From sequence record NC_061442.1: a stretch of 64,000 nucleotides of DNA; one strand, given 5' to 3'. Positions 12,067-52,194 of the stretch are shown piece after piece. The stretch's first letter is position 1; each line of letters opens with the position of its first letter. A model generated the notes under the pieces. That model was not told where the DNA came from and ran no database searches. It saw nothing but the letters and a program-made list of their open reading frames with translations. The translations under genes were made by a program, and so were the position numbers.

Positions 12067-12095
12067 CAAAGAACTCCTTGGGTTTTAACTATTCT

Positions 12096-12103
12096 AAATT
12101 AGC
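12096..12103 (-). promoter_or_regulatory. Putative late promoter motif GCTAATTT
   Basis: Exact motif between a terminator and the RBS of the next gene; recurs in other intergenic gaps. Confidence 0.6.
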
Positions 12104-12110
12104 GTAAATG

Positions 12111-12148
12111 AAAAAGGGAGCCAGGAACAAGCGCTCCAGACTCCCTTT
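12111..12148 (-). terminator. Intrinsic terminator
   Basis: Minus strand AAAGGGAG...CTCCCTTTTT immediately after the 1511-aa stop. Confidence 0.75.
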
Positions 12149-12151
12149 ATT

Positions 12152-18148: not shown

Positions 18149-18571
18149 TTACTGTGCCCTCATAGCAAACGTAACGGATTCTTTCGATTCGAGCTTAGGA
18201 CAACGCCATGTGATAACACATACATAGGTCTGCTCGTATTGATCGCTCATGGTACACGCGGTCTGGACATTCGTCACATCGTTTGTCAGGCCGTTAGCTC
18301 TGTCTTCGAGAGCAAGGCGCATGTACGTTGCAATCCAGTCGGCAGTAGTCTGGTCGAAAGGCTCAAATAGATACTGATATACATCAGCACCGAAGGACTC
18401 ACGCCATTTACGTGTTCTCTTTCGGGTGCCTATTACCATCAGAATCTTCTGGACAATGCTGTCCATGTTCTGCACGTTATCGCGGGGTTCGAGTTGAATC
18501 CACGCATTGATATCACAATAGATTCGTTCGCTAATAGGAACGTCTATTAGTCTGACTCCGATTCCAGCCAT
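18149..18571 (-). CDS. Baseplate wedge subunit, gp25/gpW-like
   Basis: SIVQKILMVIGTRKRTRKWRESFGADVYQYLFEPFD matches the gp25 family pattern. Confidence 0.85.
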   Translation of the reverse strand: MAGIGVRLIDVPISERIYCDINAWIQLEPRDNVQNMDSIVQKILMVIGTRKRTRKWRESFGADVYQYLFEPFDQTTADWIATYMRLALEDRANGLTNDVTNVQTACTMSDQYEQTYVCVITWRCPKLESKESVTFAMRAQ

Positions 18572-18861
18572 TAGCCAAATCTCACATTAGGACTACCGTT
18601 AGATGCAGTGTCGCCACAACTGTTGCCGTCACCCGCGCGTTGGGCAGGCTTACCGTTGACACGCACACTCGAACTGGAAGTAGCTTTGCCTGTATGTGGA
18701 GGGCTGTCTTTCTTCCAGTGCGGCATGTACGAGTCGCCATGTCTAACGCTTCCTTTTCCGTTAATAAGCACGTTAGCAGACGCCTGCGCAGCGACGACAG
18801 GGAAGTAGCCGTTATGGCCGGTGGACTTGTCTGTGCCTAGTCGAATAGCTTTCTGTCCCAT
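18571..18861 (-). CDS. PAAR-repeat spike tip protein
   Basis: 96 aa; AIRLGTD..TGH, VLING..SVRHGD and VRVNGKPAQRAGD...CGD motifs; GAGGAG RBS. Confidence 0.9.
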   Translation of the reverse strand: MGQKAIRLGTDKSTGHNGYFPVVAAQASANVLINGKGSVRHGDSYMPHWKKDSPPHTGKATSSSSVRVNGKPAQRAGDGNSCGDTASNGSPNVRFG

Positions 18862-18884
18862 GAATATTCTCCTCTGTTAGACAC

Positions 18885-18892
18885 AAATTAGC
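18885..18892 (-). promoter_or_regulatory. Putative late promoter motif GCTAATTT
   Basis: Exact motif just after the 18911-18936 terminator, 24 nt before the PAAR start. Confidence 0.6.
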
Positions 18893-18910
18893 TTGTTAAG
18901 CAGTAGAAAC

Positions 18911-18936
18911 AAAAACGGGCAGCCTAATGGCCACCC
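18911..18936 (-). terminator. Intrinsic terminator ending the transcript from the 19-20 kb region
   Basis: Minus strand GGGTGGCC-ATTA-GGCTGCCC then GTTTTT. Confidence 0.8.
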
Positions 18937-18972
18937 AGTTTCTGTACGCTTGGATTTTGTGTCGTCGCTCCC

Positions 18973-19116
18973 TTACGCCCGATGCAAGTGCCCGACGGCT
19001 TTAGCCGGTGAGCCGGAGTGAGTAACAAACAGGTTAACATCATGAGGCCTGTTTGACCATGCAAGCAATAGACCAAGCATCGCTATTGCTAACATCGACA
19101 CTAAGAACAAAAGCAT
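18973..19116 (-). CDS. Small membrane peptide, 47 aa (MLLFLVSMLAIAMLGLLLAWSNRPHDVNLFVTHSGSPAKAVGHLHRA); below the ORF-track cut-off
   Basis: Hand translation; AAGGAG RBS 7 nt before ATG; 20 hydrophobic N-terminal residues form one predicted TM helix. Confidence 0.65.
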   Translation of the reverse strand: MLLFLVSMLAIAMLGLLLAWSNRPHDVNLFVTHSGSPAKAVGHLHRA

Positions 19117-19134
19117 GTTTCGCTCCTTGTGTCA

Positions 19135-20130
19135 TACTTTAAGAGACTACGTTTGATCAACTGGTACTTTGCTCTGCCCGTCGTCCAACATCACTTGGGT
19201 ATCAGAACGTTTCTCTGTTTTTACCGCCTACGTTGCGGCAAGCCGCGCACGACACTCACATATCAAGGACACTCGGCGGAAAGGGGAAGTTCCGAATGCC
19301 CTAACAACATGAGTGAAGCGAAGGAGGTCCCGTATCGGTGATCTGCAGGGGTTCATGCACGTTTAACATTCGCTTCTTTGTGCGTTAAACCCTCGAGGAC
19401 CCGAATGCCCTGCTAATCATTCCACGAGGATATTGCACACCTTAGTGAACAAGGTTTCAAGCTATGGCAGCACGTCAACAACAGCGGACACACTCCATTG
19501 CAATCTGTTAAGGGCAGAATGCAACAGGCTGTGAACAGCTTGGCCGGAATAGGTTTCGCTCGTCGCCCAACTTCACTTGAGTATCTCGACCTAGACTTTT
19601 ACTCTCCACGCGAACTACAAGGAAGTGCCGCGCTTCTGTGGCCTGCGGATGTTTATCACTCTCAGACTCTTAGCTCCTGACTAGGAATTAACACGTTGAG
19701 TCGTCCGCTGGATGACGTGTTAACTCTCCTCACCTCGTAGTGCGAAGGCCAGAACAGGTGCCGATGGAATTGTCATGAAGGAATCCCTGGGGGTCATCGC
19801 TTCCCAATGCACACAGGGTGAAAGCCTATGCACATCAGGCAGCGTCTGCTGCGATACTGCTATTCCCTATTAGAGTGGCCATAGCGTTGAGTTTTCGCTT
19901 CGCCAGTCTACGTGCCTGAAGGTACGTGCCGTGCCAAGTATGTATCAGCATGGTTCCTGCTGGGCCTTTTGGGCGTCAGCGACAGAGCACATATTCATCA
20001 CGTGGGTGCCGGGGTTGTCCTCACGATTACAGAGCGAACTCAAACCGGCTAGAGGCTTGTATGCTCAAGATGCACATACAAGTTTGCGCAGGAGGACGAT
20101 GGCCGCTATGACACATCGTTCCCTTGAGAC
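19135..20130 (-). ncRNA. Candidate large (~1 kb) structured non-coding RNA of unknown family
   Basis: Only long gap without a minus-strand gene in the window; at least 10 helices, several with G-U pairs that become A-C mismatches on the plus strand; G(CUUG)C tetraloop; AT-rich segment upstream (20131-20165) and terminator downstream. Ends are approximate. Confidence 0.6.
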
Positions 20131-20168
20131 ATATTGATATTACTATCTGCAATTTTTATTTACAGATT

Positions 20169-21932
20169 TCAGAATGCTTTTCGTTCCACATTCGAATAAT
20201 AAGTTTCGTATGGGTCAGAGTACAACTCAGGACCACGTTGAGCACGTACAGTCACGTAACCAGTGTGACGGTTGAACGCGATGATTTCGACTGTAGGCTG
20301 CTTAGGCTTAATGGTCGCATAAATCGGTGCGTTCATTGTCGGCTCGTCCTTCTGTAGCATATTTACAGATTTCAGAGCTTCACCAGTAAGCGTAGGCAGA
20401 TTGAATCTGATCTCCGCACGTTTCTGGCCGAAAGCAATCTTGATTGCACCAGCAGGCATATCGACGCCGTTCTGCTTCATGTACGCGCCAATGCGACGAG
20501 CGATACCCGTCAACTGGTCACGAGTACGCGGGTCGAAAGTACCTTCAAAGCTGATAGCTTCCGCAGGCTGGCGCACAGACAAATGCAAGCCTGTGTTGAA
20601 GTAACCCTCAGCCAGCAGACGCACAACCTCCTGCACGATTTCTTTCGTGTTGGATTTGATTGCAGCGATACGCAAATCAGGCACATCAGCCTTAATAGGG
20701 TCACGCAGTTCGGTCTGGTTATCCATGTAGCCGAGTGATACGTGCTTCGCTTTGGTATACGTGTGCTGCAACACACCAGTAGCGCGAATCAAGACGGAAC
20801 CAGACTTAGCCTGATCGTACAGTTCATCGCTGGTGGTTGTGCTAAACAGATAGTAGTCTGTAGGCACCGCCATACGATTGACAGCTTCGACAGCTTTGGT
20901 CTGCACTTCTTTCACTGTCTTACCGAATACGACACGGCTGCGGTTTGGCTGCGACGCTGATACAGGGAAGAACGCTCCGTAGACAACCTGCACGTTCTTT
21001 TGAATAGGTTTCTCTGACTGGACTTTAATGCCACCCTTTAGAGGAGGCAGCTTCATGCCCACCAGCTTCCCACTAACGATTGCTTTGTTAGCGACTACAG
21101 GCTTTAGGCCAGACAGAAGTTTCTGCAACTCAGAACCGTCAAGAATCTTCTCCAGCGGAACAGCTAAGTTTTGTGCCAGATAATGCTTCTTACGGAACGA
21201 GTAGATAACCGTGTCTTTCTTGATCTGCAACGGTGTAGCCATGTTGCGACCAATCTGACCTACAGGCTGGAAGGTGTTTTTCTTATCGTCTGCCACAGAA
21301 CCGAATGCTTTCGTGAACTCCGTCTGGCCGATGATGTTAGCAACGCGCTGATGACCACGAACAATGAAGATGATCTTCGGGTCGTCTTTCATGCGCAGTT
21401 CATAACGATCTCGGTTGAGATACGTCATGCTGTACTTATCGCCTTTCTCCAGCTCAAGATCGTATTCATCGTTGGCGTCATCGACAACAACTTTCTTACC
21501 TTGATAGGTTGCGTACTGACGAGCAGGCGCGGAGGTCGAAGCGATCTCCATAGCCTTACCTGTGTTAGACAGCGCAACAGCGAAGTCAGTCACAGCAGGC
21601 ATCAGGTCAACAGCAGAAGCAACGGCGTAGCTGTTACGGTGCTCACCTAGATGCAGATGTACGGCACTTGAAGCGGACATGAATACAGTGTTACCTGTGT
21701 CTTCATGTTTACCCGCAAAGTTCATACCGCTAATACGTTCGATGATGTTTGCGCTTAACGCAGGGAACGAGATATCGCTGCCCGCAGTGAAGTCGAAGAT
21801 TTCACCCTGACGCCATGCGTAGGCAACGTTGTTGGAGCTAAGTCCGATAAACGCATCGCCGATCTGTTTGACAGTCATCGGCATGATACTCAAGTCACGA
21901 ATGACCGAGTTTTGCTTTTGAATAAGATTCAT
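20169..21932 (-). CDS. Hypothetical protein (587 aa), probable head/virion protein with the shared beta-domain
   Basis: Long ORF with RBS; internal YATYQGKK...EKGDKY...YELRMKDDPKIIFIV module shared with three other ORFs. Confidence 0.75.
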   Translation of the reverse strand: MNLIQKQNSVIRDLSIMPMTVKQIGDAFIGLSSNNVAYAWRQGEIFDFTAGSDISFPALSANIIERISGMNFAGKHEDTGNTVFMSASSAVHLHLGEHRNSYAVASAVDLMPAVTDFAVALSNTGKAMEIASTSAPARQYATYQGKKVVVDDANDEYDLELEKGDKYSMTYLNRDRYELRMKDDPKIIFIVRGHQRVANIIGQTEFTKAFGSVADDKKNTFQPVGQIGRNMATPLQIKKDTVIYSFRKKHYLAQNLAVPLEKILDGSELQKLLSGLKPVVANKAIVSGKLVGMKLPPLKGGIKVQSEKPIQKNVQVVYGAFFPVSASQPNRSRVVFGKTVKEVQTKAVEAVNRMAVPTDYYLFSTTTSDELYDQAKSGSVLIRATGVLQHTYTKAKHVSLGYMDNQTELRDPIKADVPDLRIAAIKSNTKEIVQEVVRLLAEGYFNTGLHLSVRQPAEAISFEGTFDPRTRDQLTGIARRIGAYMKQNGVDMPAGAIKIAFGQKRAEIRFNLPTLTGEALKSVNMLQKDEPTMNAPIYATIKPKQPTVEIIAFNRHTGYVTVRAQRGPELYSDPYETYYSNVERKAF

Positions 21933-24432: not shown

Positions 24433-24461
24433 GGACGTCTCCTTATACGATAGTCTCAGCT

Positions 24462-24469
24462 AAATTAGT
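24462..24469 (-). promoter_or_regulatory. Putative late promoter variant ACTAATTT
   Basis: One mismatch to GCTAATTT; lies in a 41-nt intergenic gap upstream of an RBS. Confidence 0.45.
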
Positions 24470-24473
24470 GTGC

Positions 24474-37348: not shown

Positions 37349-37390
37349 CGTGAATCTCCATGAGAATGGGCATCGTGAAACGACTGTATG

Positions 37391-37398
37391 AAATTAGC
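37391..37398 (-). promoter_or_regulatory. Putative late promoter motif GCTAATTT
   Basis: Exact motif in the intergenic gap upstream of the sheath gene. Confidence 0.6.
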
Positions 37399-37404
37399 GT
37401 GTTA

Positions 37405-52132: not shown

Positions 52133-52165
52133 GTTATTGTCTCTATGTTGTACTGTCACTCGTTG

Positions 52166-52173
52166 AAATTAGC
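52166..52173 (-). promoter_or_regulatory. Putative late promoter motif GCTAATTT
   Basis: Exact motif in the gap after the 1380-aa stop. Confidence 0.6.
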
Positions 52174-52194
52174 TTACTCAAGGTAAAGCGGGGA

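Follow-up and report, generated by a model that had tools for sequence, protein, structure and literature searches.

A structured RNA of about one kilobase, probably a new family, between the 587-aa gene and the PAAR gene of Erwinia phage pEa_SNUABM_35 and its relatives

The stretch of DNA considered here, referred to as the window, covers 64,000 nucleotides of Erwinia phage pEa_SNUABM_35, a jumbo myophage of the genus Alexandravirus with a genome of 261.7 kb (NC_061442.1); a window position equals the record position minus 62,000. All long open reading frames (ORFs) of the window are located on the minus strand. The PAAR gene (18571-18861) and the gene of a 587-amino-acid (587-aa) protein (20169-21932) are separated by 1,307 bases (18862-20168), in which the minus strand carries no gene of 60 aa or more, and the only plausible ORF is one of 47 aa at 18973-19116. 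Within this gap lies the subject of the present work, an RNA body of ~980 nt (19155-20135, minus strand) defined by covarying consensus folds, an excess of G.U over A.C cells, the absence of coding signals and the absence of Rfam matches. The original prediction described the site as a gene-free kilobase embedded in the virion gene cluster. The first part is correct for minus-strand genes of at least 60 aa but overlooks the conserved 47-aa ORF between the RNA and the terminator. The second is correct for one side only, as the RNA is placed at the junction of a baseplate block and a nucleotide-metabolism block (dTMP kinase, NUDIX, MmcB-like). The orientation of the RNA is that of the flanking genes.

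Eighteen relatives were fetched, comprising thirteen Alexandravirus, two Sasquatchvirus (Y3 and pEp_SNUABM_52) and two phages of the unclassified SNUABM_13 group. Every fetched relative has a gene-free gap of 1.27-1.46 kb in the same location, which can be aligned end to end, with 56-93% identity to the window. In this alignment, invariant blocks are interspersed with stems whose two sides change together. The short coding sequences (CDSs) annotated within the gap are not common to different records, and several are on the plus strand. An example of such an annotation is the GenBank CDS pEaSNUABM35_00112 (53 aa, window 19519-19680, plus strand), which runs antisense inside the RNA and is absent from the relatives. 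This call is very probably spurious, and so very probably are the plus-strand CDSs in the gap of SNUABM_16, _22, _17 and _32. The public annotation is corrected in this respect, with several GenBank records carrying short hypothetical CDSs on the wrong strand inside the RNA. Two further peculiarities are seen among the relatives. AD1, 2910A, SNUABM_33 and SNUABM_3 (L004, L007, L008, L009; alignment A1, columns 1562-1690) have an extra ORF of ~41 aa between the terminator and the PAAR gene, and in SNUABM_16 and _22 an insertion of 76 nt separates the promoter-like motif from the stop of the 587-aa gene.

The evidence for an RNA structure is comparative. For the minus strand of the whole gap in 18 sequences, RNAalifold predicts 359 pairs with 94.1% of the cells paired, and 150 of the 359 pairs have changes on both sides. 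As coding control, 1,400 nt of the 587-aa gene were folded for this set of 18 phages, which gives 350 pairs with 90.7% of the cells paired in the sense direction, but both-side changes in only 49 pairs (sense) or 39 pairs (antisense). A second consensus fold of 16 sequences, three of them from metagenomic relatives, contains 209 pairs, 110 with compensatory changes. The syntenic comparison of related jumbo phages, which the original prediction had proposed as a check, hence detects covariation above that of the coding control. The minus-strand RNAalifold model holds 858 G.U cells against 99 A.C cells, and this difference identifies the minus-strand RNA as the selected molecule, in line with the earlier argument from G-U pairs. 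Judging from the aligned sequences, 19155-20135 of the minus strand is almost certainly a structured RNA.

The 3′ domain was further examined by a covariance model (R1; 187 positions, 46 pairs). In this model, 94.5% of the cells are paired compared with 75.7% after shuffling, both-side changes occur in 36 of the 46 pairs compared with 20.6 in the shuffles, and none of 500 shuffles attains the observed pairing or covariation. Sliding the partners by 1-3 columns leaves 31-46% of the cells paired.

Ten helices had originally been found by hand in the single sequence. Nine of them are present in the RNAalifold consensus of 16-18 homologues, and eight of these nine have compensatory changes: 20056-20082, 19807-19835 (part of a 19-bp helix), 19685-19726, 19497-19525, 19391-19429, 19361-19390, 19235-19246 and 19171-19208. 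The ninth, 19528-19539, is invariant and therefore uninformative either way. The tenth, 19440-19454, falls outside the consensus model, in a gappy part of the alignment, and covaries by eye in columns 901-925.

A gap of gene size, in which some records annotate short plus-strand CDSs, could also represent a decayed protein gene, or a DNA element such as a replication origin, a packaging site or a protein-binding array. The alignment of relatives, however, contains neither a conserved ORF nor a 3-nt periodicity in the RNA region. The variable columns of the gap are distributed over the codon phases as 249/245/226, compared with 200/146/405 in the coding control. Among the 125 distinct gap runs, whose lengths modulo three are distributed as 23/69/33, 102 are not multiples of three. 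The longest stop-free runs reach 74-148 codons in frames which differ among relatives, and, as stated above, the annotated short CDSs are not shared between the records. For a DNA element, the tolerance of wobble pairs on one strand only would be unexpected, and no shift is visible in composition or GC skew, which are flat across the gap. Both variants of this explanation are very improbable.

Size and degree of structure are also the only properties that the RNA shares with the known catalytic and housekeeping classes, i.e., a group I or II intron, RNase P RNA, tmRNA, an rRNA fragment or a tRNA array. The cmscan search of the whole window against Rfam 15 (4,227 families), a check that had been suggested earlier, gives no match at the gathering score. 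At E<=10, the 1.7 kb of 18700-20400 yield only a chance snoRNA match, and ten relatives have no match at the gathering score. The Rfam models of GOLLD, ROOL and OLE do not reach their gathering threshold. ARAGORN detects no tRNA or tmRNA in the 64-kb window, and blastn detects no similarity in 5,426 E. coli genomes. Against an intron stands the position of the RNA between complete genes, with the flanking genes ending at the same conserved residues in all relatives. Membership of a known class is hardly credible, and the original statement that no hallmarks of a tRNA, tmRNA, RNase P or complete group I/II intron are seen agrees with ARAGORN and Rfam. No description of this RNA was found in the literature, and it is highly likely that it constitutes a new RNA family, absent from Rfam 15. 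The central proposal of the original prediction, an undescribed large structured phage non-coding RNA, is upheld by covariation, strand asymmetry, the negative Rfam result, the non-coding character and synteny across genera.

Directly after the stop codon of the 587-aa gene lies a near-invariant promoter-like motif of 33 nt (20136-20168, minus strand). All 33 positions are identical or nearly so in the 18 relatives, which differ by up to 44% elsewhere, and positions 20145-20167 also form a hairpin of 8 bp rich in A and U. With <=3 mismatches allowed, the motif is found once in the window; in the most distant loci it is varied rather than identical. In Yoloswag and SNUABM_5, the motif core is preceded by a GC hairpin and a T-run closing the upstream gene. 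Further intergenic sites of the SNUABM_3 genome carry the 13-nt core, as does the region 5′ of the small ORF in Yoloswag, and the motif before the RNA differs from the one upstream of the structural genes of the window. We infer that 20136-20168 is a promoter of a separate class and the probable start region of the RNA transcription unit. An exact 14-nt copy of the core is located at 20359-20372 (minus strand), 203 nt further upstream, where the 587-aa gene approaches its 3′ end; as only the three closest relatives have this copy, it was set aside. A 19-nt AT-rich promoter pattern was also searched in IMG/VR and gave mostly chance matches.

The RNA itself starts with a 5′ domain (19865-20131, minus strand). 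Two hairpins, variable and covarying, come first, and one of them is 20056-20082, with 7 of 8 pairs compensatory; conserved helices follow. According to the per-helix counts of the pair table, these are 20008-20049, a 20-bp helix at 19910-20003 (98% paired, 10 compensatory pairs) and 19872-19909 (5 of 12 pairs compensatory). The next element on the minus strand is hairpin H6 (19795-19848), with a conserved stem base and apical loop, 19 bp, 94% of them paired, and 6 compensatory pairs. H6 is the element of the family that can be recognised furthest: nhmmer detects H6-like hairpins in Yoloswag, SNUABM_5, L150, L151 and L157, and an H6-based pattern retrieves family members and isolated chance matches only. 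In the SNUABM_13 group (S13, S45, L023; alignment A1 columns 664-680), an inserted hairpin carries the 7-nt loop of the H6 tip, which suggests that this loop is a reusable module. The central hairpins (19469-19539, minus strand) consist of 19528-19539, the 13-bp helix 19495-19527 (95% paired, 6 compensatory pairs) and 19469-19494; a central 12-bp helix has no compensatory pairs.

On covariance-model evidence, the RNA body holds two tandem homologous units, both on the minus strand. Unit 1 (19537-19726) comprises the hairpin 19685-19726, with 9 of 10 pairs compensatory, the pseudoknot (PK) PK-b, a junction with the hairpin 19602-19638, and the module hairpin 19547-19596. Unit 2 (19154-19442) comprises the hairpin 19389-19431, PK-a and a three-way junction (19223-19343), and to it belong the long arm 19248-19320, the tetraloop hairpin 19235-19246 and the module hairpin 19171-19208. 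Unit 1 is recognised as well by the covariance model built from unit 2 (window 19537-19639, E 1e-3). In 15 other RNAs this model matches at the corresponding place, in 14 of them over its whole length and in one only in part, with E values from 2e-8 to 2e-3 overall.

At the start of each unit stands a hairpin, and its loop forms pairs with a strand that follows 55-65 nt downstream. In PK-a, 19409-19413 pairs with 19345-19349, and four covarying variants are all paired at five of five positions. In PK-b, 19704-19708, at the tip of the hairpin 19685-19726, pairs with 19645-19649, and its three covarying variants are likewise all 5/5 paired. Three other candidate long-range pairings (PK-c, PK-d and PK-e) found partial support only and were not retained. 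Each unit closes with a module hairpin, in which a loop of ~16 nt is conserved and the letters of the closing stem vary while the pairing is kept. The first module copy (19558-19585, minus strand) has a covarying closing stem of 3 bp, and the second (19176-19203, minus strand) is aligned by covariance model with the twice-repeated hairpin module of the distant-type RNAs described below. The two copies form a 28-nt direct repeat with 86% identity.

The family adjoins the 587-aa gene in at least six genera and in metagenomic lineages. RNAs of the window type were detected by blastn, nhmmer and motif scans in Alexandravirus, Sasquatchvirus, the SNUABM_7/13 group and the metagenomic lineages L028, L033, L149 and L155. 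In Yoloswagvirus, Rivsvirus, Salmondvirus and the contigs L044, L150, L158 and L159, the 587-aa homologue and the PAAR gene remain syntenic, and the matching spot is occupied by 0.6-1.3 kb of gene-free DNA with the promoter-like core, an H6-like hairpin, a PK-b-like strand motif and a twice-repeated hairpin module of its own. With filters off, the unit 2 model matches L044, JA13 and JA29 at E 3e-7 to 1e-5, and their module is aligned to that of the window. L151 and L157, which run colinear with the window type, are matched by both profiles and in this way bridge the two sequence types. By these matches, the window-type and distant-type RNAs are one family with modular gain and loss.

The 587-aa homologues with 43-100% identity always have the RNA next to them, and the most distant homologue (31% identity, L153) has neither the gap nor the RNA. 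When 185,579 reference genomes were scanned for the H6 pattern, the only match was a chance one, in a Sphingomonas contig of 67% GC without profile similarity; the matches in L034 and L146 are also due to chance and lie in coding DNA. Within the collections searched, a single clade of Erwinia/Dickeya jumbo myophages accounts for the whole family. In Salmondvirus, the ORF following the RNA and the PAAR gene are separated by a second gene-free stretch, of ~690 nt (L019 5274-5984, L021 6325-7016, L022 6592-7282). It holds the small membrane ORF, and its match to the covariance model is at best marginal (L021 6331-6356, E 2.7).

The 47-aa ORF (18973-19116, minus strand) has a ribosome-binding site, lies between the RNA and the terminator, and encodes an N-terminal hydrophobic helix with a polar tail. 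Its frame survives indels of 3 nt and 15 nt, and jackhmmer finds homologues of its product at 16 loci, including the SNUABM_5 and L150 lineages; Yoloswag gp109 resembles it by eye. The ORF is annotated in only some relatives, and its product has no family match in Pfam or PHROG. In Yoloswag, SNUABM_5 and L150, the small ORF is found 3-7 genes from the RNA, and the Yoloswag copy has its own promoter-like motif. The ORF keeps its neighbourhood in all genera checked, also where the RNA is not upstream. It is probably a real small membrane protein, which in this phage would be co-transcribed with the RNA. Hairpins at 18967-19019, conserved and covarying, extend into the 3′ part of the ORF, and the groups seem to use different C-terminal frames while the nucleotides remain similar. 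The unit of RNA and small ORF is closed, ahead of the PAAR gene, by an intrinsic terminator (18906-18942, minus strand), a 13-bp GC-rich hairpin with a T-run, 100% paired and with 2 compensatory pairs. Both flanking signals of the original prediction, the AT-rich segment (20136-20168) and this terminator, are present and conserved.

The PAAR baseplate-spike gene (18571-18861, minus strand; Pfam PAAR_motif) has its own conserved upstream motif at 18862-18905. An 8-nt motif of the GCTAATTT type is found 20-40 nt upstream of the start codons of the PAAR gene and four other genes, at the minus-strand sites 18862-18905, 12070-12151, 24433-24473, 37349-37404 and 52160-52194. This motif, which is distinct from the one before the RNA, probably represents the promoter class used by the structural genes. 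The 587-aa gene (20169-21932, minus strand) is the invariant upstream neighbour of the RNA. Its protein has KMPT-N as its sole Pfam match (E 3.7e-19) and belongs to a PHROG family without assigned function. The AlphaFold model (pLDDT 81.3) finds only uncharacterised phage proteins in BFVD, and the Protein Data Bank (PDB) gave no sequence match, and no fold match at E<=0.001. A faint BFVD link connects the protein to a SprT-like phage protein, which agrees with the "metallopeptidase fusion" name of KMPT-N.

From these features, the following course of events can be proposed. Transcription would start at the reused phage promoter-like motif (20136-20168) and would end at the intrinsic terminator (18906-18942), so that in this phage the 3′ end of the transcript would carry the small membrane-protein ORF. 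As covariation shows, the RNA folds into a compact body of at least 16 helices, in which each of the two tandem units is fixed by a loop-strand pseudoknot and presents the shared hairpin module. The folded RNA would then act in trans and not as a message, with the duplicated modules and other invariant unpaired stretches as the places where a phage or host protein docks, or where contacts of RNA-RNA assembly are made. The reading that is favoured here, with some confidence, is a gene for a stand-alone RNA of ~1 kb that may work as a scaffold, ribonucleoprotein or decoy, similar to what has been proposed for GOLLD, ROOL and OLE. That the RNA acts on its own in trans, rather than as a leader, is in itself rather probable, and its assignment to a protein-binding scaffold or decoy specifically is tentative. 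The original prediction had likewise suggested a scaffold, and as other possibilities a late-expressed or packaged RNA or an anti-defence sponge. An own transcription unit is indicated by the motif placed after a terminator in Yoloswag and SNUABM_5, the motif at other intergenic sites, and the downstream terminator. A more speculative proposal is a new giant phage RNA class acting together with the adjacent tiny membrane protein, as a clade-specific ribonucleoprotein that would be tethered to the membrane or associated with the virion. If this is true, the biochemical role of the RNA would be one so far without a known example among phage RNAs.

The same arrangement could be explained by a cis-acting structured leader, that is, a giant 5′ untranslated region controlling the stability, translation or read-through of the next gene, which here would be the 47-aa membrane-protein ORF and in the Yoloswag and Salmond types an ORF of 103-171 aa. 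An ORF follows the RNA in every lineage with no terminator between them. In the consensus fold, the ribosome-binding region of the small ORF (19122-19133) pairs with 19097-19108, but this hairpin has only 1 compensatory pair. Two pyrimidine-rich stretches, conserved and unpaired (19321-19328 and 19616-19626, minus strand), show complementarity to ribosome-binding sites, among them the site of the small ORF (19122-19128); by eye, no compensating variation accompanies them. The pairing of the loop 19616-19626 with this site was considered and rejected: the two are complementary in this phage, but by eye the loop varies in the relatives and the site does not change to match. The downstream gene changes between lineages while the RNA core is retained, and ~1 kb with two pseudoknotted units far exceeds known leaders. 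The distance of several genes between the RNA and the small ORF in Yoloswag, SNUABM_5 and L150, together with the separate motif of the Yoloswag copy, shows that the RNA is not merely the leader of this ORF. Overall, the leader is a less likely explanation, of low but appreciable probability.

Several points weigh against the stand-alone RNA. The transcript ends, abundance and timing are all deduced, and the missing terminator between the RNA and the next ORF is common to both sequence types. The shuffle-based statistics are inflated by the kinship of the sequences, and the weight therefore rests on the coding-region and slid-partner controls. The folding energy of single sequences is no better than that of shuffles, with a mean z of -0.23 for the minus strand of the gap compared with -0.67 for the coding flanks (200-nt windows, 60 dinucleotide shuffles, both strands). 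The original prediction had named this result as one that would speak against it, and formally it is what was obtained. The folding z-score is rejected as a criterion here; the comparative evidence outweighs it, and the case is made without a thermodynamic basis. The 587-aa protein offers no functional clue as a partner of the RNA in Pfam, PHROG, PDB or BFVD. Finally, the survey of loops revealed no palindromic loops covarying as palindromes and hence no pointer to self-assembly, which is a weak negative. This survey bears also on RNA-only assembly, in which the RNA would multimerise into a closed particle that encloses or organises other molecules. Size, ornateness, phage origin, many invariant unpaired nucleotides and modular repeats are consistent with such an assembly, and a precedent exists in ROOL and GOLLD, which multimerise into closed particles according to cryo-EM (Nature 2025, PMC12286853). 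The lack of palindromically covarying loops and of matches to the ROOL and GOLLD models argues against it, and a closed RNA particle is quite unlikely, more so than the leader.

Known natural RNAs of such size and complexity are very few outside rRNA, introns and RNase P, and the earlier classes OLE, GOLLD and ROOL each raised structural and functional questions. In the present case, cultivated and sequenced phages, tractable plant-associated hosts, an alignment rich in covariation, a two-unit architecture and a defined neighbourhood are available, and structure determination and expression mapping are therefore directly feasible. In its general kind the RNA falls in with the ornate phage RNAs already known, but it belongs to no described family. 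Like GOLLD-type ornate RNAs, it is phage-encoded, at least 800 nt long, rich in covarying helices and pseudoknots, and composed of a conserved and a variable part (PMC12286853). Unlike them, it does not match the Rfam model, occurs in lytic jumbo phages of Enterobacterales and is built of tandem homologous units. A site beside tRNA genes is frequent, though not obligatory, for GOLLD and ROOL, whereas the window RNA has no tRNA genes nearby, or indeed anywhere in the 64 kb. With ROOL (Rumen-Originating, Ornate, Large) it shares the nature of a large ornate phage or prophage RNA with multiple pseudoknots and without a known protein partner; it differs from ROOL in the unmatched Rfam model, in a length nearly twice as great, and in its hosts and genomic setting, which lacks a tRNA island.

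Other parallels concern the neighbourhood and the repeated module. The OLE RNA gene directly precedes the gene of a small membrane protein (OapA) in one transcription unit. The order of the window RNA and a small membrane-protein ORF, which stays near the RNA in all genera checked, may be analogous. The differences are that the OLE model of Rfam is unmatched, that OLE is bacterial (Firmicutes) and not of phage origin, that the small protein of the window, unlike OapA, has one predicted hydrophobic helix and no family match, and that in some genera the small ORF is several genes from the RNA. In a type I toxin-antitoxin mRNA, a small hydrophobic ORF with a sequestered ribosome-binding site goes together with a cognate antisense RNA; here the ORF is small and hydrophobic, a hairpin is predicted to cover its ribosome-binding site, and it stays in place also in genera in which it does not follow the RNA. 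The display of one hairpin module repeatedly on one RNA, for multiple copies of a protein, would resemble the sponges of the CsrB/RsmB type. The resemblance is one of functional analogy: in contrast to these sponges, the window RNA presents two copies of its module only, on a far larger compact body, and no known protein-binding motif was identified in it.

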